A stretch of 63,626 bases of DNA, the filler included, from Pelomyxa schiedti (taxonomy: Eukaryota; Protista; Evosea): NCBI GenBank assembly GCA_020536535.1. It is 8 parts of 8 records of this genome, joined end to end, with 100 filler letters (N's around TTAATTAATTAA, not from the genome) between each part and the next. Parts side by side here need not be neighbours in the genome. Positions count along the whole stretch, not along the records: positions 35,976 to 46,589 come from JAHLWZ010001260.1; 7 more parts are not named here. One strand, given 5' to 3'. A model generated the notes under the pieces. It was not told the origin of the DNA. It worked only from the letters and a program-made list of their open reading frames with translations, and searched no databases. Shown one piece after another: positions 35,876 through 46,589 of this stretch. Every line of letters starts with the position of its first letter. Within the stretch, counting starts at the first letter, position 1. The position numbers and the translations under genes were made by a program.

Positions 35876-36348
35876 NNNNNNNNNNNNNNNNNNNNNNNNN
35901 NNNNNNNNNNNNNNNNNNNTTAATTAATTAANNNNNNNNNNNNNNNNNNNNNNNNNNNNNNNNNNNNNNNNNNNNACCCCGCCAAGTGTAAAGAGCCCCC
36001 CAAACTCCGATTTTTTGATGGTGGTATTTTCAAAAAACGCCTCCTCAACCTGTCATTTTTAACGCTCAATTCTCCGGTCATTTGCACACCGGTGTAAGTT
36101 TAACTTTTTTCCCTGTGGTTTTCCGGTGTATGCCTTTAAAGAAAGTGGGATCAAGGGCCACAGGGTGAGGAGCAACTTAGCCCTTTTGCCTGACCTTAGC
36201 GGAATCATCAACCTTACCGCCTAGGCGTGATGTTTACCATACACAGCACGGACGGCAATACAAATTTGCCCTGCAAAAACTTTGTTTTTGCTCAGGTTAA
36301 GTATTATCAGTCAGAGAAAAATTTAGTGTTCTTGAAGCACTAGCTGTT

Positions 36349-36838
36349 CTATGGTGTAGCAAATTTACTTGTCCACTCTTTCGCGGTTTGAGCGAAAGTG
36401 GTGGGAGCAGAGGAAAGCACCGCGCCAACCTCTGGGTTAATGCATCTTTCCATGGAAGGATCCGATATAAGCATGAACAATTCACACAGCACGTCAGAAG
36501 CTCTGTTCGACATGGACCAATCTTGGACCACATTTAAGCACACTTCAGACGCATTCACACCAGGGTGGAATATCTTGGTCTCAAAAACTATGGCTGGTGG
36601 GGCAAAGGGATAGTTTGAATTGAATTCCAGCAAAACCGTAAAAACTCCTCCCTCGTAAGGTGTACCCTACTGCACGTTAGTCATGTGAAGCAAGCACAAC
36701 GAGAATGACCTGGGCACCGGCGATCTGAGCTCGCCATTTGTTTACGTTGTTGTCAACTAACTCAACTCCTATGCACCCCAGCGGTAAATCGTGCTTGAGT
36801 TTTGTGAGCTCGCCCACTAGTTGCCTCTGCCTGGACAT
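36349..36838 (-). CDS. Ubiquitin-conjugating enzyme E2 (divergent UBC4/5-like), 2 exons
   Basis: MSRQRQLVGELTKL...WRAQIAGAQ/GTPYEGGVF...YPFAPP...TKIFHPGVNASEVCL. Intron 36667-36709 has GT..AG and a GACTAAC branch site. Confidence 0.92.
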
Positions 36839-37715
36839 TTTTGATTTTCTGTACGGTCGTTGTTCTTCGAAACTGATTTGGTCCTCGTTGTTCCCAAGTT
36901 GTTGGACCAACTCACGAAAAGCAACGGCACAAACACACAAACAAAAAACCAAAAAACCTACCAATAAACAACGAGCCTCCATGTTCACAATATTCATTAA
37001 GCTGAATGAAACTATGACTTTTTCTGAGCCCGAAATATCTCAAACAATGACGGTATGGCATTTCACAAAGGCTTCCGTAGAACTAAAATACGAAGGTGGA
37101 ACAACTTATCGGGGTCATCAAACGCCGCACTAGGGACCCCACTGGCGACTATGCCCTCTTTTATTTGGTAAAAGCCCTACAACCACAGCACACACTGGAG
37201 TCTTATGGGGTGAGAAATAACTCCACAATACATGCATCCAAAAGGTAGTGCTGCTCTTCCTAAGTTTGTTACTACCTCTATTACAGAGGGCGTGGTGGCG
37301 ATTCATGTGAATAGATTATGTTCAGCCAAAAGGGTTGGAAAACAATAAAGAACACAAGAAATAAATAACCGGTTTTTCATTCATTGAAAATCTGAAGCTT
37401 AGAATAACATCTACCGGGAAATGTTATTCCGGGTTCAATCTCGGCGCTGCTTCGACAACTCTGACATTTGCTGAATGCCTCAGTCCCGACCCTGCACGAA
37501 CGTAGGTCTTGATGGTAAGGGTCTTCTGTTGGTACCTCTACCCCACACCTGCGTGTTAAGGCTCTAGCTATTGTCCACTCTAACTTCTAAATTCTATACC
37601 TTTACACCCTAGAGACCTGCCTGGATTGGGTTTGGGTTGCTTGATGGGGCTGGTTAACGAAAAACCCAACAGCTATTTTCTTCAAACCTACATCCAGTTG
37701 TCGTTTTCACTTGTT

Positions 37716-39595
37716 TCAGAGAGCCCAGGTTTTCTGTAAAAAAGTTAGTTCATGATGTGTAAAACTTGGTTGCAACCAATCTGCTTCCAGACGGGTGTAA
37801 AACAATACAAGTGCATTGGAAGTTGTAACCCCAGTTGAGAAAGTCCCGCTCATTTGAGTGACAATTGTATCAGAGATGCTCCAATGCACACCATCCTTTA
37901 TTACATGAGCTGTGTAGTGTCCACTACTTAGCTGCGACCCCTGATGTTCCTGGGAAGTGCAAATTAGTGCTGGAAAAACTACTGTTTGGCATACTGAAAG
38001 TGCATAGAGCCTGTAGGAAAACGTCCCACTACTCAGACAAGAAAAGTTGGTATGAAGAGGCACTGAAACAGGCGTGCGGATCTTGGCTGATGTGTGGTCA
38101 AATCGCTGGAGATGAATAATCACTATTGGTGGAAGCAGTATGACAATAGACATTTTCTGAAGGGATTGTTTCCCACACTGCGGGCACCCAATAGTCTCGG
38201 GCCGGGAAAAATCAGAAAGACAATCTTCTAAAGGAACGGTTCTGCTGCGATCGGGAATTGGAATGTCTAAAAACGCCATTGGAGAATATGAGGAAGTGTT
38301 CTAATGCTGTGATTAGAGGGAAGATATCGGTATACAAATAATACCCAGCCGCAACAGCTCTCTGTGCAATCCATTTTTTCTAAAGTTAGGCCATGGAAAA
38401 GGTCCACAATAATTGAACTGTTGGATCCTAAGTGCTCATTCCAGGCTTCAAATGCCAGAGAAGAGGCAGCATCTCGTGGTATTTCCAAAGGCCTTGGTGT
38501 TGTGGTGCAGATTCCATTTAGCTCTTGGTGAAGAGCGTCAAGGAGAAGAACCAAGCATTCAAATGAGTCCTGCTGTTGAGTACCACTAAATTGATTTGCA
38601 ACTTGGGCTATTTGTGACTTCAAATTCACTGGAGATATTACCCTACTGGCTGAGTGGAAAGCTTGAATAACCTCCATAAAGCTCCTGGTGAGTCTTCTGG
38701 CTGAAGAGCTCCTTTTCTTTCTTTTCATCTCTTTCTCCAGTGCACCGCTTGTAAAGAAATCAACTAGAGGAGATGTTACCAATAAACACTGCAGGGTACT
38801 ATTCATGTAGCATGTATTCCCCAGATTTTGCAACCCTTTTGGTGTGTAGGGTCTGTGCAAAATTTGTTTGGCGTCGGGCTGTTTAATACTTCTTAAGTCG
38901 TCAGTGCAATGAGAAGGAAGAGCCGAAGGACATAAATGTGAGCTCTGTTGCACTTCTGGCTGTTTGTGCAGAGGTGGAGGTGAAAGGGAGCGTATATCTG
39001 TATCTTCATTGATGCATATTTTGATCGCGTGATGTTGGGCCGTTGGTGCACTTTGTTGTGGTGGTGTAGGAGGTTGCACTGACCCCACCTCTGTTGCGCG
39101 AACGTCTGCACACGATAGAGGCCCGATAAGAGTGGTAGATTGTTGGGGAGCCTGCTTGTCACAGCATTGGACCTCTATGACGCTGTGCTCAGAAGGCACC
39201 TCTTTGAGGCCAGTGATAATCTCAGAAGGAGAAAGAACTTCATTCGTAGCAGGACGGTGGACTACTACTGCTTCCAACTGAATAGTGCTCTGTGGATCGG
39301 AAATGGTATTCGTGTGCAGCGGCTCATGTTTTGACTTTGGAGACCCCCCCGAGCTCACAGTTTTGTTGGTTTCTCTTTTTGTTGTTCGGTTTGTGCTCTG
39401 TGTGGATCGCGGAGCATCGGAAGTAAACAGGCTTCCCGGTTCCTCTGCACGTGCAACTGGGAGTGGCTTAGGCTGAAGAAGTTGTGAAGAGGCTGTTCTT
39501 CGTCGTTTGGTTCCGCTCTTTACGAAGACCCAAAAAAATAGCATACAAATAGCCGCAAACCCAAGCCAACACAAAGCGAACGCTGTGCTGTCCAT
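37716..39595 (-). CDS. USP-family (peptidase C19) deubiquitinase with N-terminal transmembrane anchor; 3' end may extend further
   Basis: Cys box GLQNLGNTCYMNSTLQCL, QQDSFECL, IHLQRF, His box HQGSQLSSGHYTAHV...WSISD. N-terminus MDSTAFALCWLGFAAICMLFFWVFVK followed by KRRR. Confidence 0.92.
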
Positions 39596-39791
39596 TTGCC
39601 CAATGCAACGAGAGTCTGCGATAAGGTGTGTAGACACTCGCGTCAGGCCAGGTAAATTTCCCCTAGCACCGATTCTAGTTCCGGAAAGTGCTCCCAACTT
39701 CGTCGGGAAAGTTGGTCCTAGCCAAGTTGAGAGAAAGCAAGTGTGAAAAACGAAGGTGAATTAATTAAACTTCTTCACAACCGAGTCGGAC

Positions 39792-41055
39792 ATGGCAGCC
39801 AACCTAACCATACAGTTGGACAATAGTGCGAGAGGCTCCCCGAACTGTGAAATCACAGTACCAGTGTCTGCTACACTCGCAGAGCTTCAGACGGCTGTTG
39901 AGACAGCGACTGGGGTCAAGATCGGGTTCCAGAGCCTGATATTTGAAGACAAAACCATTGCACAAGGTGCTGATGCGACCAACACATCGGTTACAATTGC
40001 TTCTCTGGGCATGATACCTGGCCAAACGTTGGTTCTGGAAGTGACGGTTGCTTTTCCCACCTTGAACATTTTACTCATTTCAGTTTCTTTCACTCCAGAA
40101 AAGTGGAGGGCAGAAAACAAACGCCGATCCAAAAATGTCCATATCTACTGCGACTGATGGTCACCTGGCACAACTTCCCTGTGGACACTTCATCTCCCCA
40201 GACGAGCTTACCGGCTACATACGGTAAGGTACTGATTGTTGTCCTTTGACATTGTGGCAGTTACATTCTTGGTCTTGGCAGAATTGCCATCCAGTGCCCT
40301 TTCAAACCATGTAGGTCCTCTCGTTACACTTTTCTTCTTGCAAACACTATGTGCAGCGAAGACGGGTACCGCCTGTAATCGCAATTTCACAATGGAAGAA
40401 CTGGGAGCTGCCGCCAGATTGACGATTGCAGAAACTCGCGAGTTTGAGGAAAAAGTGGGAGACAACTTTTTACTAGCATTGGGAATGCAAAACTGTCCAA
40501 AGGTATAGGTATTCATTCCTCCAATATCTCACCAAAGGTTTTAGTGCAATATCATGTGCCAACGTACAGTTCTTACCGACCCACGAGTAATTTGCTGTGG
40601 AAAGCCATGGTGTTGGTACTGCAGACGAGAATGGAAGGGCAGCGACGCTGTATTGTGTGGTAATGAGGACTGCCCCAAAAAGGACCCATTCATCCTCATT
40701 TTGGAGCAAGCAGAAGAAGCTGTATGGGCTCCCTGTTTTGTTGTACCTTACCGACTCATAAAAGCTGGCCTACGATGTTCCTATTTTCAAAACTAGAAGC
40801 TGTGTTAACTGTGGGCTTCTAATCACACACAATGGGGTGGGTATTTTTATCTTAGGATAACCACTACTGTCATTGACTCCTAAAAAACAGGCATGCAAGC
40901 ATATGCTCTGCACAAGATGTCAAGTTGAATTTTGCTTCAGCTGCTTGAGCCGAAAAACAGCAGGCAAGTACCCTCCTTCTTGTGGAGCCTACAGCACCAA
41001 GTGCCCAAGACACCCTAGGCAAACAGTCAGGGCTTCCCTGCCATTAGGTTCCTGA
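39792..41055 (+). CDS. Ubiquitin-like domain (ending in GG) fused to an RBR-type E3 ligase
   Basis: Ubl fold ITVPVSATLAELQTAVETATGVKIGFQSLIFEDK...TIASLGMIPGQTLVL, spliced to KSGG. Degenerate RING1 (LPCGH). IBR CPKC...CCGKPWCWYCRREW. RING2/Rcat RSCVNCGLLITHNG/ACKHMLCTRCQVEFCFSCL. Confidence 0.85.
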
Positions 41056-41427
41056 TTTCCCCCAACATTCAGGTGTTCTGCTTCTTAAAAACTTCATACT
41101 TGCCTCCTGTAGCAACAATTGTTTTGTGAACGTGTAGCTTTATTCTATTTTACCTCGTGTTAACAAACTCTCTATTGTTGTAGTGCAACAAAACACGAGG
41201 AGGGTGTTCTTCTTTTCATCATGGATTTCAGACATGCAACCTTGGCACCAACGAGAATCATTGCGTAAATTCGGGTAACTACAGGAACCTCTCCGAACAT
41301 CCAGAAGAGCTTCGAGTATAACTGGTTCACGCCGACTATGAAAAACAACGTGACACGTTGACAGTAATTTCTTCGATTTTAATAATAATCGTGTTCCCCA
41401 GACAGGGCTATTTCTGTTGTTTAACAT

Positions 41428-44400
41428 TCACCAATGGATGTGGAGAGGTGGAAGGGACGGAGTGTCTTCAGTACCGATCACCTTTTTCCTTCAGTTACAA
41501 GCAAGTTTTTGAGGGTTGGTTGTTACCTCCAAACGGAAAAAATTATGGTGTTCAGGGAGTACCCCTGGTAGTTTGGACAGATGGAACTGCATACTGACAA
41601 CGATTTAGTAACATCTTTAAAAAAGAAGGAAACCTTTTGTTCAGATCTAAAGTAGACCCAAGCCTAAGAAAGACAACGATATCATTGAAGAGAATCGCTT
41701 CTACGGTTGTTTGGTATTTCCCCTTTTTCAATGTTAGGTTGAATAGTAACTAGTAAGCTTACTTCATAATGCCGAATTGTCTCCTGGAGAGTAATGCCAG
41801 GTGGCAACTCCAAGTGATCCCACTCTGTCCAAGCCCCATCTGATGCAGGTGGAAATGGCTCAACGAAATTCCATGCCTCAATATCATCGAGATTTAGGAA
41901 TGATGATCTCAGCTGTTCAATAGACAAATTAGCGGAAGCTAGCTTCACCAGCTCAATGCATTGAAGGCTAAACCACACACTATTACTGTGAAAGACTTTG
42001 TTAGATTCATTTACCCGGCAATAGCAGCTGTGGTGGAAATCAATGCAGGGATAATATTTCCAATTATTCTTCGAGATGAATGAAAGTCTATGGGATCAAT
42101 GCCATAGTTATTCGCTCTTATCACTGCAGCAGCATAGACAAACGGCATATGATACAGGGAGTCATCATCCTATCAAGGGGTGGTGAGATCCTTGGATAAG
42201 TGTACAACAATCTCACCTTATCAAATTTTGCAGGTAGGAAGTCCGCGGGCAGTGCGGCAGAGAGGTCACTAGCACTTTGAGTGGCAGTAATGTTGAAATT
42301 CTTTGCCCTAATATTAGAAGCAGACTGCACAAATGAAGCATGCAAGGACTTCGTGCTATCGTACTCAATTGGTTGAGGTTTTCTTCGAGGGGGCACCCAG
42401 AAGGTTTCTAATTTTACACGTGTCACAACGAATGCTATTACTTAATAACTGATTTACCAGTTGCAGGATCCTCTGAAGGAGGGTACAGCACAAGTACATG
42501 TTTGACATCATCATGAAAAAGTTTATGAAAGATCTTACAAGACCAGTCCACGCAGTGAGAAAATGTTGTTGGGATCCCCATATCACTTTCCTTGTTTTTA
42601 ATAAAAAGAGCTTCAAATTGGTCACGTGCCCATTGTAAAGTATCTTTCATCTCCACAGGGAAAAACTTGAGTGTGCACAGAGGTATGGAGCTGGTATTTC
42701 CATCAGTTCCATGATTTCCAGCTCCAAAAGACTCAGTGATGTGGGGAACAGCCACTTGAACATTTCCCTCTGGTCCAATTGTACCACCATCCACGAATGG
42801 TTTGGAGTGAATTTTGGATTGTAGGTCTAAGTATCTGCGGGCTGACATGGAGTCTAATGCAGAGATAATTACATCGATTGATGAGAAAAATTCGTAAGTA
42901 AAAACATCTGGACTGAAGTGAAAAAGGAAAGGGTCAGAACAAAAATGTACCTGAGCGTTGCAGCATCATGTTGTACGCAGTGGCATTAATCTCGGGGTTA
43001 ATCTTTAAAGCCGCTTTGACGGCAACCTGGGACTTGGGTAACCCTATGTCGGTGGGGCGGAAGAGAAATTGCCGACTTAGGTTGGAGTTTTCGATGCTAT
43101 CCATGTCAACGACATGCAAGTGTCCTATGGTACTTAGTAAACTCAAGAAAAAAACCTCTCACCATTTCTTTCTGTGGCAGCCCCCAAAAGACTCAAATTC
43201 TTGATAACTTCACATCCTATAGCACCGGCTCCAGCCTAAAGAAAGTGTAAACCGACTAAAACAGAGCAGGGATATACTAGCAAAATATTTGATTTTCTAA
43301 GCGCGTCATGCAAATCCTCCCCGATTAAAGCGGCTTGGGCTCTGTAACGAGTAGGAACTCGGTCTGTCAAAGGTACCCGTTTTGTGGATATAATTTCGGA
43401 AAAGTTAAAGAGTAGCCACTGGTCAATTGGGTTTAGGCGATGGGAAATAATTTTGATGACTTCGTGGCAGAGTACTCCACCAATGAAGGAAATCTAATTG
43501 AAATAAGAGGGAGTAGAGGAACAAACTTACAATGGGTGGAAAGGAGCAGCCACACGTTGTGGCAATCAAGGACACGAGATCGAGGTTTTCATGGGTGTTG
43601 TAGTTGAGATGTCTGTAAATGTTCAAGAGTTCTTGCTCATGTATCTGTAGGCTCGTGAGGTCAAAGAATATCTTCTACAAGTTACAGTGTTTCCTGGTTC
43701 TGGGAGAGTCGAGTGTTTGTCAAACCACATGCAAGCTGAGAGAAGTGCTAAGTGACACTGAAAATATGTGTCCTGCAGATAAGGAGCATGAACCTTGATT
43801 TTAGATTCAGGGGCTCCAGAAATAAGCTCAGTGAGAGGACTCTGGTATGAAGTATGAATAAATAAAGAGTGAACTTAGTGTTTACTGCGTTGAGGACGCA
43901 GGAATCCCGCCATAATATTAAAGTGCCAGTGGAGATTGACACTGAAGAGGAAATCTCCCCAACCTTGTATGTGCATGTGCCTTGAGTTCATTTGAATGTG
44001 AAAGAGGTATTAGAAGAATAACCAACTCGACAGAATGAAAAAAGTGGCTGCTTCGTTTCTTTATTGAAGGTGAGATCCCCAGCACCTTCAAAGTAACCTC
44101 GAAAAGTGTCCGGAAACAAATCAGATGAAGTCGTCACAATGCAATCCTGCAGATGAATAAGAGGAGGGAAAAACCCACCGTATCTTACATGTAAAGATAC
44201 AACAGGAGAGCTACACAGCGGTTTGCCGCCATTTTGGACACAGAAAGAGGTACCAAAATCATTGAAAATAAATCCAAACCCGCCAAGAGAAGTCACCCAC
44301 AAAAATGTGGTATGGTGATTTCTACATAAAATATCCAGCTCACAAGCGGTATTAAACGAGTACCCAGTGAAAAGTACAATCTTTTACATAATTGAGAAAA

Positions 44401-44845
44401 AGATTATTTGAGAAGGAATGAACGTCATGGCACTCTATTATTCTTGGTGAAATGCTTGGTTCAACAGCAACTTGAACAAATTCACTCAATTCAGTGAGGT
44501 GAGGCCTTACAGCTTCAGCAGTGACTTGGCCTATGTCTTTGGCACTCAAAAATAGCTACAAAGGATGAGTGATTCGTGTGAGTCGATTGTGAGCGCAGAC
44601 CTGTGAGCCAATGTCAGTTGGTGAAACAAGCGAGGAGTCACTTATGGACACGCGGTCCACGCCCATAAGTACCAAGTTTTTCGCTGTGTGTTACTTAGAC
44701 CTACTCCAAACGTAGAGTTACCTATTTCTGTGCCGATATCCTTTTGTCCAACAATCAACACTTTGCATGTAGATAAACATGTTTGCACGTCCGCGCCCAG
44801 AGCATAAATCTGGCGACTGTACCGCTGCCATTGGTCGGCTTGCAT
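41428..44845 (-). CDS. Divergent monomeric UBA1-type ubiquitin/Ubl-activating enzyme E1, multi-exon
   Basis: RYSRQIYALG, AKNLVLMGV, GAGAIGCEVIKNL, DMDSIENSNLSRQFLFR, ALDSMSARRY, GNVQVAVPHITESF, catalytic SIPLCTLKFFP (Cys codon 42675-42677), IIPALISTTAAIAG, UFD WTEWD...; ends ...PSLPPLHIHW*. Confidence 0.93.
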
Positions 44846-45365
44846 GTTTAAACAAAACAATAAATTCAAATTGGTCTTGCTGTTCCAACTTGCCTCCCGG
44901 CCGCAGAGCCCTGTCTCTGAGTAGTGTACGGGTGTTATGTAGGTAAAGGCAAGCACGCTGTTCACTGTTTGGGGTCGCAGACTTCCACACCTGAAGAACA
45001 TGCATATCTGGTAAATAGGTTTAAAAAGGTCATGGTTGATAAAAAAATTGTTTTGCCATTTATGTCAACAGAGACCACTGATTACAAAAGTAACTAACGC
45101 CACTATTTTCCATCCCCACACAAGCCACCAAAGACACTTTCCCCAGCAATAAACACCAATGCCACCAGCAACAACAATAACACCATTATGTGCGCCTGGT
45201 AGCTAAAAAAAAGGTGATTGGTTACTTTGCTGTGAATACAGTGGTGTGCCCCTTTCCTTTCAAGGTCTCCTGAATCTCCCTCAGGGTCCCACAACCATTC
45301 GTCTGGCAGAGTTCCCATAAATCCATCTGATTAGAACTGTACTTAGAGTATAACGACGCGAAGTC

Positions 45366-46589
45366 ATGAGCACGGGAGGCATAGGCGGGTTTCTCCGTGG
45401 GATCACGGCGTCGCAGGACTGTGGTGCGTCGCCCAACCAGTTGTCGTCGTTGGCACGTGCGGTAGGCGGTAGAGGGGGCGGCGGATCTCTCGTTGCAATG
45501 CAAGATCGTTGGATGCGCGTTGCACAGAGGGTGTGTGCCATTGATTACTTTTGTTGTGTGTTTGTTGTTTGTTTTTTTTTAATAAACCACAAAGCCTCCG
45601 AATGTAGTGCCACTCAGCAGTGAGCAGATGACAGACATCTTACACACATTCATTCATAGCACAATGAGCGCAACTCCAATGCCTGTGTAAGTTCCTTTTA
45701 ATTCACATGGGCTTTGTATTCACTTTTCCTTCTTCCAGTGGAATGATTCCAGATCCTGGACTATCTGCCGTTGAGCAAATGAAAATCATGCAACGCTCAC
45801 AAATGTTAGCACGGCACATGTGTGCGGATCAACCTCCAGAATTTGCCGATTCACAAGTGAGTTTGTGCTCGTCGTAGGGATTTCAATATTCACACTTTAT
45901 CAACACAAAATATGCCTAGGTAGGTGCTATTCTTGGTACGCTTCACATCTCTCCTGAGCAGCTGGAAGCATTTGATGCTGGTTGGGATGCTGGTGAATAC
46001 ACAGGTCAGTTCGAAGGAGCTTGGGCTTCTCAAACTGGAGGTGACTGGGCTGAAGAATTTACTGCAGCACCACAAGTTCAACTTCCTCAGGACCAGCCTG
46101 AAAGTACATTCTATTTCTGTTTGACACCACGAGATATCAGTTCTAACTTTTTGCCGCAGCTTGGGTACAACAATTTGCTGAGCAAGGAGAGGCAGAAGAA
46201 TTTTTTGACAACACAGCTGATCTTGAACTTGAAAAGGCTTGGAACGCAGAGGAGTCCGCCGCCGCACCTGCGAAGTTGTCAGACCCCATTGAAAGAGAAC
46301 TCGAGGTTTGTGTTTCTGAGAACTGTTTGTGTCAATGTAATAAGTTTACAGAAACAACGATTGCGTGAGGCAACAGGGCGGCTCGTTGATGCTGTGAGTG
46401 ACCCCAAAGTTAGAGCAACCAAATTCATGCAATTTATGAACCAACTTCGCACTGGGGAGGTACCTTCCCCATTTCCTAACCATGCCTCAGTTTTGTTTAT
46501 CTCTAAAATAGATGGAAGTGAAGGACAACACTGTAGTAGTCGGAACTGCTGCGAACACAACAACAGGGGAAGACTGGGCAACTGAATTT
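45366..46589 (+). CDS. PEX5: PEX5, peroxisomal PTS1 receptor, N-terminal half (TPR domain lost beyond gap)
   Basis: N-terminal Cys motif QDCGASPNQLSSLA. WxxxF motifs DWAEEF, AWVQQF, DWATEF. PEX7-binding-like box DPKVRATKFMQFMNQLRTGE. Confidence 0.85.

Follow-up and report, generated by a model that had tools for sequence, protein, structure and literature searches.

Ubiquitin-like proteins (Ubls) served by private enzymes are already known from several cascades (ISG15, FAT10, and others), and complete, physically clustered sets of conjugation genes occur in prokaryotic operons such as that of Caldiarchaeum subterraneum (Ub-E1-E2-RING-DUB, i.e., ubiquitin, an activating enzyme or E1, a conjugating enzyme or E2, a RING-type ligase or E3, and a deubiquitinase) and in bacterial BilABCD. 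The genes for the conjugation enzymes of eukaryotes are normally dispersed. Here we describe a locus of Pelomyxa schiedti, an anaerobic archamoeba (Archamoebae) that hosts methanogenic and syntrophic endosymbionts and possesses anaerobic peroxisomes as well as mitochondrion-related organelles, at which five intron-rich and divergent genes of the Ubl system lie within 8.5 kb: an E2, a free-standing Ubl (Ubl1), a ubiquitin-specific protease (USP), a RING-between-RING (RBR) ligase fused to a second Ubl (Ubl2-RBR), and an E1. To our knowledge no complete gene cluster for Ubl conjugation has been described in a eukaryote before, so that this one would, if true, be the first. A 2024 review of how the ubiquitin system evolved (PMC11354881) mentions clusters or operons of ubiquitination enzymes from archaea and bacteria only.

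With the prokaryotic operons, the Pelomyxa locus shares the physical clustering of a complete set. Those operons encode small ThiF-type E1s and JAMM proteases, whereas the Pelomyxa parts are of eukaryotic type (UBA1, UBC, RBR, and USP), carry spliceosomal introns in each gene, and are divergently transcribed. Membership in a prokaryotic Ubl operon class (Bil, 6A-MBL, or Caldiarchaeum type) was rejected on account of the USP protease and the spliceosomal introns, and a bacterial defense-type system was rejected as well because PADLOC returned matches to the E1 adenylation domain only (1e-10 or weaker) and none for the other parts. Judged by their motifs, all five parts are catalytically intact but aberrant, and with somewhat better than even confidence we read the cluster as a lineage-specific Ubl conjugation cascade that would be orthogonal to, and operate beside, the ordinary ubiquitin system. 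That the pathway is dedicated and orthogonal to ubiquitin is something we infer; the novelty lies in the physical clustering of a complete set in a eukaryote, in an orphan Ubl family, and in the pair formed by this E2 and the RING1 of this ligase.

The window analyzed here is a stretch of 63,626 nucleotides joined from eight parts of the P. schiedti genome, and all positions count along it. Its positions 35976-46589 (10,614 bp) are the whole of contig JAHLWZ010001260.1 of assembly GCA_020536535.1, for which the NCBI gene table lists three genes, i.e., the E1 (850 aa), the RBR (329 aa), and the USP (576 aa). Gene models were built by splice logic and compared with RNA contigs from two single-cell transcriptomes of one study, while Pfam and PDB were searched exon by exon and exons were joined for translation and local alignment only. 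The resulting models correct the public annotation, from which the E2 gene and the free Ubl are missing and in which the E1 is short by 47 residues: the two genes are added and the E1 is extended accordingly. The features of the locus are as follows.

36349-36838 (36349-36666, 36710-36838), minus strand: E2 gene, 148 aa in two exons separated by a 43-nt GT..AG intron; Pfam UQ_con 2e-24 for 36352-36666.
36839-36980: E2-Ubl1 intergenic region of 142 nt, delimited by the two ATG positions; putative bidirectional promoter.
36981-37314 (36981-37052, 37096-37244, 37287-37314), plus strand: Ubl1 precursor, 82 aa in three exons with introns of 43 and 42 nt.
37733-39595, minus strand: USP-type deubiquitinase-like protease, 576 aa in four exons; Pfam UCH match and RNA-supported introns.
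39596-39791: USP-RBR intergenic region of 196 nt, delimited by the two ATG positions; putative bidirectional promoter.
39792-41055, plus strand: Ubl2-RBR gene, 329 aa in seven exons; splice model of the same length as the NCBI model.
39792-40110, plus strand: Ubl2 domain, 89 aa, including a 52-nt intron at 40047-40098; weak Pfam and PDB matches.
40111-41055, plus strand: RBR module RING1-IBR-Rcat, residues 90-329; five of six introns confirmed by RNA.
41428-44845, minus strand: UBA1-type E1, 897 aa in 18 exons with 17 introns of 37-50 nt; ThiF and SCCH domains.
45366-46589, plus strand: 5' part of PEX5 (peroxisomal import receptor), with frames matching the Pelo_2506 sequence; truncated where the contig stops.

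Introns in all five genes measure 37-54 nt with GT..AG at each fully determined boundary, and the reading frames are unbroken across 29 introns and about 2,030 codons. All three USP introns and five of the six RBR introns are seen as RNA joints, and RNA contigs for E2, USP, and RBR are present in the same single-cell transcriptome. RNA contigs bear the template-switch adaptor at 36622, 39408, and 40113, and these junctions are not true transcript 5' ends because all of them fall within coding regions. The adaptor at 40113 was considered as a genuine start of the RBR transcript and rejected, given that the same adaptor is found at 36622 within a coding exon of the E2.

The genes are arranged as head-to-head pairs that, counted from ATG to ATG, are separated by 142 nt (E2/Ubl1), 196 nt (USP/Ubl2-RBR), and 520 nt (E1/PEX5). 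The P. schiedti genome holds 149,016 introns (98.4% of them GT-AG) at an average of 7.43 per gene, and our chance estimate therefore assumes ~20,000 genes. With generously assumed family sizes (2 UBA1-type E1s, 30 E2s, 10 RBRs, 20 USPs, and 10 GG-ending Ubls), the expected number of five-gene windows with one member of each class is ~1e-10, an order-of-magnitude figure that depends on the sizes assumed. Chance co-location of the five classes is thus negligible. An earlier note on this stretch had claimed that the features of an E1, an E2, an RBR, a Ubl, and a USP are present, that together they make up a full conjugation cycle, and that the clustering is non-random; Pfam matches, alignments, and RNA bear out the first of these points, the gene content of the 8.5 kb the second, and the chance estimate the third. 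The same note had counted four genes with no recognizable gene between them. There are five, with the free Ubl at 36981-37314 (plus strand) between E2 and USP.

The heptamer CAAGTTG/CAACTTG occurs in all three head-to-head regions (36839-36980, 39596-39791, and 44846-45365), and TTGGTCCT is common to the first two of them (36839-36980 and 39596-39791). When a shared promoter motif was sought across the three divergent regions, neither of these words was significant against shuffles. Flanking repeats as left by a mobile element were sought around the cluster, and none were found.

The free-standing Ubl1, placed between E2 and USP by sequence reading and spliced translation, has the sequence MFTIFIKL...STIHASKRGRGG-DSCE, i.e., a mature form of 78 aa that ends in ...IHASKRGRGG and is followed by the four-residue tail DSCE. 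Modifier precursors are marked by a di-glycine with a short tail behind it, and Ubl1 can be placed among the precursor Ubls ending in GG, with the completeness of its beta-grasp fold judged by eye for exon 1, which on its own has no match in Pfam or PDB. Exon 2 alone matches Pfam ubiquitin (E=4.9e-5, 23.4 bits with a cut-off of 25.4) and aligns without gaps to ubiquitin 34-69, with a match to FAT10 that is about equal. Compared by eye with textbook ubiquitin, the tail is in register and K48, H68, R72, R74, G75, and G76 are kept. Ubl1 and the RBR-fused Ubl2 are only weakly alike (z=2.9), and Ubl1 is the better candidate for the modifier.

The E1 is colinear with UBA1 over its full length. Our model reproduces the 850 aa of NCBI KAH3732046.1 exactly and adds a first exon (MQADQWQRYSRQIYALG...GTEI) that supplies the 47 residues lacking at the start of that entry (MQADQWQRYSRQ...). 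Pfam recognizes ThiF in two stretches (198 bits), the adenylation motifs GAGAIGCE and DMDxIExSNLSRQFLFR are intact, ALDSMSAR aligns, and the catalytic Cys lies in IPLCTLKFFP, aligned to IPICTLKNFP of human UBA1. SCCH scores 122 bits and carries deletions of 32 and 47+7 aa. FCCH and 4HB have no Pfam match and UFD reaches 18.5 with a cut-off of 25, whereas the UBA1s of Dictyostelium and Entamoeba pass all five domains. Against the NCBIfam model TIGR01408 (Ube1), the enzyme, queried without its 47 N-terminal residues, obtains 470 bits vs a cut-off of 750.

Identity of this E1 to canonical UBA1s is 31-35%, while these are 39-59% identical to one another even with the fast-evolving Entamoeba enzyme included (39-48% for the other Archamoebae UBA1s). 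Of the positions at which 162 UBA1s show at least 90% invariance, it keeps 55% vs 73-86% in four other archamoebal UBA1s, and the lowest values are found in FCCH (27%), 4HB (30%), and UFD (35%). The UFD of UBA1 is the domain that recruits the E2. Going by these comparisons, the E1 is diverged beyond the rate of its lineage. Its catalytic exon scores higher against UBA1 than against UBA6 or UBA7, and the slightly higher identity to Mastigamoeba UBA1 (35%, the best match) hints at a host origin. In a FastTree phylogeny it stands alone on a long branch (1.72) within a polytomy made up of fast-evolving E1s, which makes its placement there unreliable.

In an exhaustive HMMER scan of 1.84 billion representatives, only the E1 itself was more than 50% identical to its catalytic exon and all else stood at the level of generic E1s. 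E1 relatives were also sought at the DNA level in JGI metagenomes and IMG/VR, where none were found, while the best metagenome match of the E2 in a DNA-level scan is 42% identical and generically UBE2D-like. By these scans the cluster is not a set of housekeeping genes shared widely. Candidates for a second P. schiedti E1 turned out to belong to other organisms, including a gut archamoeba, and the neighbors of the canonical UBA1 in this gut archamoeba are unrelated to the cluster. For loci drawn from human-gut metagenomes, the analysis covered the gene table of the protist contigs. Entamoeba marina holds two full-length E1s of UBA1 type (P0016 and P0320, 56% identical), which indicates E1 duplication elsewhere in the Archamoebae. 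A viral origin was considered in light of a divergent E1 (P0171) on a virus-like contig but is not supported, as this enzyme is not sister to the Pelomyxa E1 and its neighbors have no detectable ubiquitin-system domains. That contig (Logan SRR31214395) is 17 kb long, intron-less, and dense, with XRN_N, an AP endonuclease, a methyltransferase, and a histidine kinase/response regulator; at L003:7318-10404 it codes for a UBA1-like E1 of 1,028 aa in which only ThiF and SCCH are recognizable.

The E2 has the UBC fold, and by its best PDB matches (~1e-21), all UBE2D/UBC4-type E2s, it is derived from the UBE2D/UBC4 type. The catalytic Cys is retained. Aligned to UBE2D, it has HPG for HPN, CLN for CLD (D87N), and DPSMERC for DPNPDDP (D117R), and it thus lacks the HPN, Asp87, and Asp117 of the UBE2D/UBC4-5 class. 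An RNA contig (36354-36622) covers exon 2 with zero differences and confirms the substituted bases. Wu et al. (EMBO J, 2003) are said to have found that transthiolation can do without the Asn of HPN whereas isopeptide formation requires it. The incoming lysine is oriented by D117, and UBE2L3, which has a His at that position, reacts with thiols only (PMC5095918). Without Asn77, Asp87, and Asp117 (UBE2D numbering), the Pelomyxa E2 is therefore predicted to be unable to attack lysine and to be a pure transthiolation enzyme that would hand over its cargo to cysteine only.

The minus-strand frame is open upstream of the E2 start (36839-36997), where it would add a hydrophobic segment (CLLVGFLVFCLCVCAVAF), and an upstream E2 ATG overlaps the Ubl1 ATG in a CATG palindrome. 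Such an N-terminal extension was considered as a membrane anchor; we judge it more likely to be a T/G-rich untranslated region because helix 1 of the E2 starts at the Met of 36838.

In the Ubl2-RBR protein, Ubl2 ends in ...GQTLVLEVTKSGG, in a register that matches the ...STLHLVLRLRGG of ubiquitin, with LVLEVTKSGG as its C-terminus. Its matches are weak, both in Pfam (ubiquitin 0.014, Ubiquitin_2 0.031) and in PDB (Ubl domains of BAG1, UBL4A, and DSK2). Some 20 residues lead from the GG (residue 89) to LPCGH, and unlike Parkin the protein has no RING0/UPD. RING1 holds zinc site II only (C-x-H ... C-x10-C), and all four ligands of site I are absent: neither the segment from GG to LPCGH nor FISPDEL contains a Cys, in a region covered by RNA, so that the eight ligands of a C3HC4 RING are incomplete. 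At the place of the IBR lies a Cys-rich stretch (CPKCNIMC...CCGKPWCWYC...C...C) in which the IBR His is replaced and whose exon alone has no Pfam or PDB match. The Rcat domain reads THNGACKHMLCTRCQVEFCFSC, and its NGACKHM motif is made by an RNA-confirmed splice. The Rcat exon matches IBR_1 (5.7e-4) and also IBR in Pfam, both weakly, the catalytic context G-C-x-H-M-x-C is present, and the Cys of GACKHMLC aligns with position 310 of ARIH2 in the best-scoring stretch.

The USP model, equal in length to that of NCBI (576 aa), matches Pfam UCH (PF00443) with 9e-32 and 6e-13 at profile positions 2-151 and 130-254. Both catalytic boxes of USPs (peptidase C19) are present, i.e., GNTCYMNS for the Cys and SGHYTAHV for the His, and the nearest solved structures of the core are USP4, USP15, USP8, and USP2, with an alignment to USP4. 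Introns 37734-37776, 37950-37994, and 38301-38344 are backed by spliced RNA contigs in two runs. The stop codon is formed by the last splice (37733/37777), with two bases from one exon and one from the next, and an unspliced transcript would gain 23 residues. The N-terminus is hydrophobic over residues ~5-25 (21 residues; Kyte-Doolittle mean of 2.4 over 19 aa) and continues with KSGTKRRR, followed by a low-complexity linker of ~270 aa before the core. Given this composition, the N-terminal segment should be a membrane anchor, and by the positive-inside rule the catalytic domain would reside in the cytosol.

Seen against these results, the components that the earlier note had described fare differently. 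Its E1 with intact adenylation and PLCT motifs agrees with our alignment to UBA1s and its USP with Cys and His boxes with the Pfam UCH match and the USP4 alignment, and the divergence that it had noted for all components is evident from the E1 identities of 31-35%, the E2 substitutions, and the one-zinc RING1. Its E2 does have the active Cys but not the HPN triad (HPG), and its RBR does have the Rcat Cys of NGACKHM, on a splice confirmed by RNA, but a degenerate RING1. It had also cast the RBR-fused Ubl as the modifier, a part for which the free Ubl1 with RGRGG and propeptide is the better candidate.

If the cluster is a dedicated cascade, its parts would be held together as about three co-regulated head-to-head gene pairs, and the cycle might run as follows. 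The Ubl1 precursor would be trimmed after RGRGG to remove DSCE, with the cluster USP as the likely protease. The E1 would then adenylate Ubl1 and form a thioester on the Cys of IPLCTLK, from which Ubl1 would pass to the cluster E2, limited, like UBE2L3, to transthiolation. The Rcat Cys of the RBR would accept it there, the one-zinc RING1 would match the odd E2, and the RBR would modify substrates. Ubl2 might regulate the RBR as in Parkin, or cleavage at its GG might yield a second modifier. Held at a membrane with its catalytic domain in the cytosol, the USP would reverse the modification.

A co-adapted cascade of this kind is favored over a set of drifting paralogs because the changes appear patterned across the parts. 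The E2 has lost exactly the residues of aminolysis and adjoins an E3 that requires no more than transthiolation and has a remodeled E2-docking RING1, the E1 is altered most in FCCH, 4HB, and UFD, and Ubl1 and E2 have a putative promoter region in common. It is also favored because the USP could both mature and remove such a tag. The membrane anchor of the USP suggests an organelle or vacuole surface as the site where the pathway acts, and with PEX5 adjoining the cluster we lean towards that of an organelle; tethering of a deconjugase to a membrane hints that the cascade controls an endosymbiont, peroxisome, or mitochondrion-related compartment. Roles in defense, symbiont control, or organelle quality control are guesses. 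The full picture of a previously unknown Ubl with an orthogonal E1, a thiol-only E2, an RBR, and an anchored USP, encoded in a co-regulated cluster and acting on the surface of an organelle or symbiont vacuole with a possible link to PEX5, strikes us as an even call.

Several points weigh against a dedicated cascade. Its support comes from sequence features and RNA contigs, and the genome is derived from amplified single cells. Only its divergence marks the cluster E1 as an extra paralog, and word-index searches brought up no second P. schiedti E1 among the best 120 of more than 5,000 matches listed. The Asn of HPN is also structural, so that HPG could mean a weakened rather than a specialized E2, and a RING1 without one zinc site could likewise mean decay. 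No ortholog was found from which purifying selection or conservation of gene order might be read; the same order was looked for elsewhere and none was found, with unrelated genes next to the UBA1 of the gut archamoeba. Expression, a further point raised for the cluster as a whole, is seen for E2, USP, and RBR, while the two transcriptome runs contain no RNA contig over E1 or the free Ubl. The first exon of Ubl1 and the first intron of Ubl2 are without RNA support.

Among the other explanations, the one that survives best is that E1, E2, RBR, and USP handle ordinary ubiquitin for one membrane-bound process, much like UBA6-USE1, and that both Ubls are regulatory and not conjugated. All four enzymes come from ubiquitin-specific families (UBA1, UBE2D, an Ariadne-like Rcat, and a USP4/15/2-like core), Ubl1 retains with R72, R74, and GG the features that ubiquitin enzymes read, and fusions of an RBR to a non-conjugated Ubl are known from Parkin and HOIL-1. 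However, conjugated modifiers are characterized by just such a GG tail and short propeptide, the E1 is altered most in FCCH, 4HB, and UFD, and the putative 142-nt promoter region is shared by the E2 and the free Ubl, and we consider it unlikely that the cluster serves ubiquitin alone.

The same divergence could also be that of duplicated ubiquitin-system genes which are relaxed or decaying and drift without forming a coherent pathway. Five extremely divergent genes, an E2 without the HPN Asn, a RING1 without four zinc ligands, a replaced IBR His, deletions in SCCH, and the lack of any orthologs found would all fit. Yet over about 2,030 codons and 29 introns not one frame is broken, no catalytic Cys has been lost, the adenylation motifs are kept, and the losses are patterned and not scattered, comprising one zinc site in its entirety and just the three residues of aminolysis. 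RNA shows transcription and correct splicing for at least three genes of the cluster, and chance would hardly bring together one gene of each class. Decay thus appears to us quite improbable.

Within the preferred reading of a dedicated cascade, a more specific proposal is that it serves the peroxisomal receptor cycle, modifying PEX5 at its N-terminal Cys or acting at the peroxisome surface, with the USP removing the tag. PEX5 adjoins the E1 head-to-head, its conserved N-terminal Cys is present (SQDCGASPNQL), and the anchor of the USP with its basic residues presumably resembles that of USP30. The classic example of an E2 transferring ubiquitin to a cysteine is the recycling of PEX5 (PMC4822130), the cluster E2 is predicted to be thiol-only, and 'Pex4' does not appear in the main text of the P. 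schiedti paper that reports 13 peroxins. Nevertheless, the adjacency of a single gene says little, and the divergent regions have no significant promoter motif in common. The PEX5 pathway as known also works with ubiquitin and, instead of an RBR, with the RING peroxins Pex2, Pex10, and Pex12, all of them present in P. schiedti. To us this proposal remains an attractive long shot.

The frames at 45366-46589 match the transcriptome-derived Pex5 (Pelo_2506) printed in the supplement of PMC8887013, and a PDB search with the PEX5 frame gave no match. Between the genomic sequence and the published transcript, glycine runs differ (MSTGGIGG vs MSTEGGGGIGG and RGGGGS vs RGGGGGS).

The P. schiedti assembly is based on amplified single cells. 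In each of two DNA runs, one contig spans the tested 6 kb with zero differences, and both runs contain every sampled word of 36300-45100. They are no independent proof of contiguity because they come from the same sample, possibly the assembly's own source. Both separately assembled DNA contigs, when extrapolated from these 6 kb, would end alike at ~36071, some 95 nt inside the left edge, which suggests a repeat or a coverage break there. GC is even along the contig (0.39-0.51) and composition uniform. That unrelated pieces were joined during amplification, or that the contig stems from another eukaryote, is conceivable for an amplified single-cell assembly whose two DNA runs share one sample and may be its source, but it is extremely improbable given that the two separately assembled runs agree without interruption or difference, that composition is uniform with introns of 37-54 nt bounded by GT..AG and short gene spacing free of junction-like breaks, and that the PEX5 at its flank is known from the published P. 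schiedti transcriptome and spliced P. schiedti RNA matches exactly.

The word 'ubiquitin' is absent from the main text of two P. schiedti papers, and we conclude from this that the cluster is not described there. If our reading of a dedicated cascade is true, the locus would be a natural minimal orthogonal Ubl system of five small parts, useful for reconstitution and for tagging in synthetic biology. It would also be a natural experiment in the co-evolution of E1-E2, E2-E3, and Ubl specificity, with an E2 that lost aminolysis and a RING1 with one zinc site, and it would show that gene clustering by bidirectional promoters can evolve for a signaling cascade in a protist.

Of the eukaryotic systems that resemble single parts of the cluster, Parkin and USP30 offer a Ubl-RBR ligase and a USP that has a membrane anchor at its N-terminus with basic residues behind it, a pair that acts on organelle surfaces. 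The Pelomyxa RBR differs from Parkin by the lack of RING0 and the single zinc site of RING1, and the Ubl of Parkin is without GG. No specific sequence relationship to either protein was found; the Rcat is nearest to ARIH2 and the USP core to USP4, USP15, and USP2. For the E2, the closest parallel is UBE2L3 (UbcH7), which has no acidic residue at D117 and is specific for cysteine, as is predicted for the Pelomyxa enzyme, and since it reacts only with cysteines, an E2 of this kind depends on an E3 with an active-site Cys (PMC5095918). UBE2L3 keeps HPN, whereas in the Pelomyxa E2, by sequence closer to UBE2D, all three of N77, D87, and D117 are lost.

Two further pathways invite comparison with the cluster. 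UBA6-USE1-FAT10 combines, as the cluster would, a second UBA1-type E1 with an E2 of its own and a Ubl that is not ubiquitin, and exon 2 of Ubl1 matches FAT10 about as well as it does a single ubiquitin; the Pelomyxa E1 exon scores higher against UBA1, however, FAT10 is a tandem Ubl, and the genes of that pathway are unclustered. In the ISG15 pathway (UBA7-UBE2L6-HERC5-USP18), the genes lie dispersed in vertebrate genomes, ISG15 consists of two Ubl domains, a HECT ligase takes the place of the RBR as E3, and USP18 is soluble, while the Pelomyxa E1 matches UBA7 less well than the ubiquitin enzymes and Ubl1 has no match to ISG15. The resemblance is one of analogy, not of membership. It consists in a private cascade that would have been built from paralogs of ubiquitin enzymes, i.e., a UBA1-derived single-chain E1, an E2, a thioester-forming E3, and a USP, around a Ubl that in both cases is a precursor with a tail after GG.

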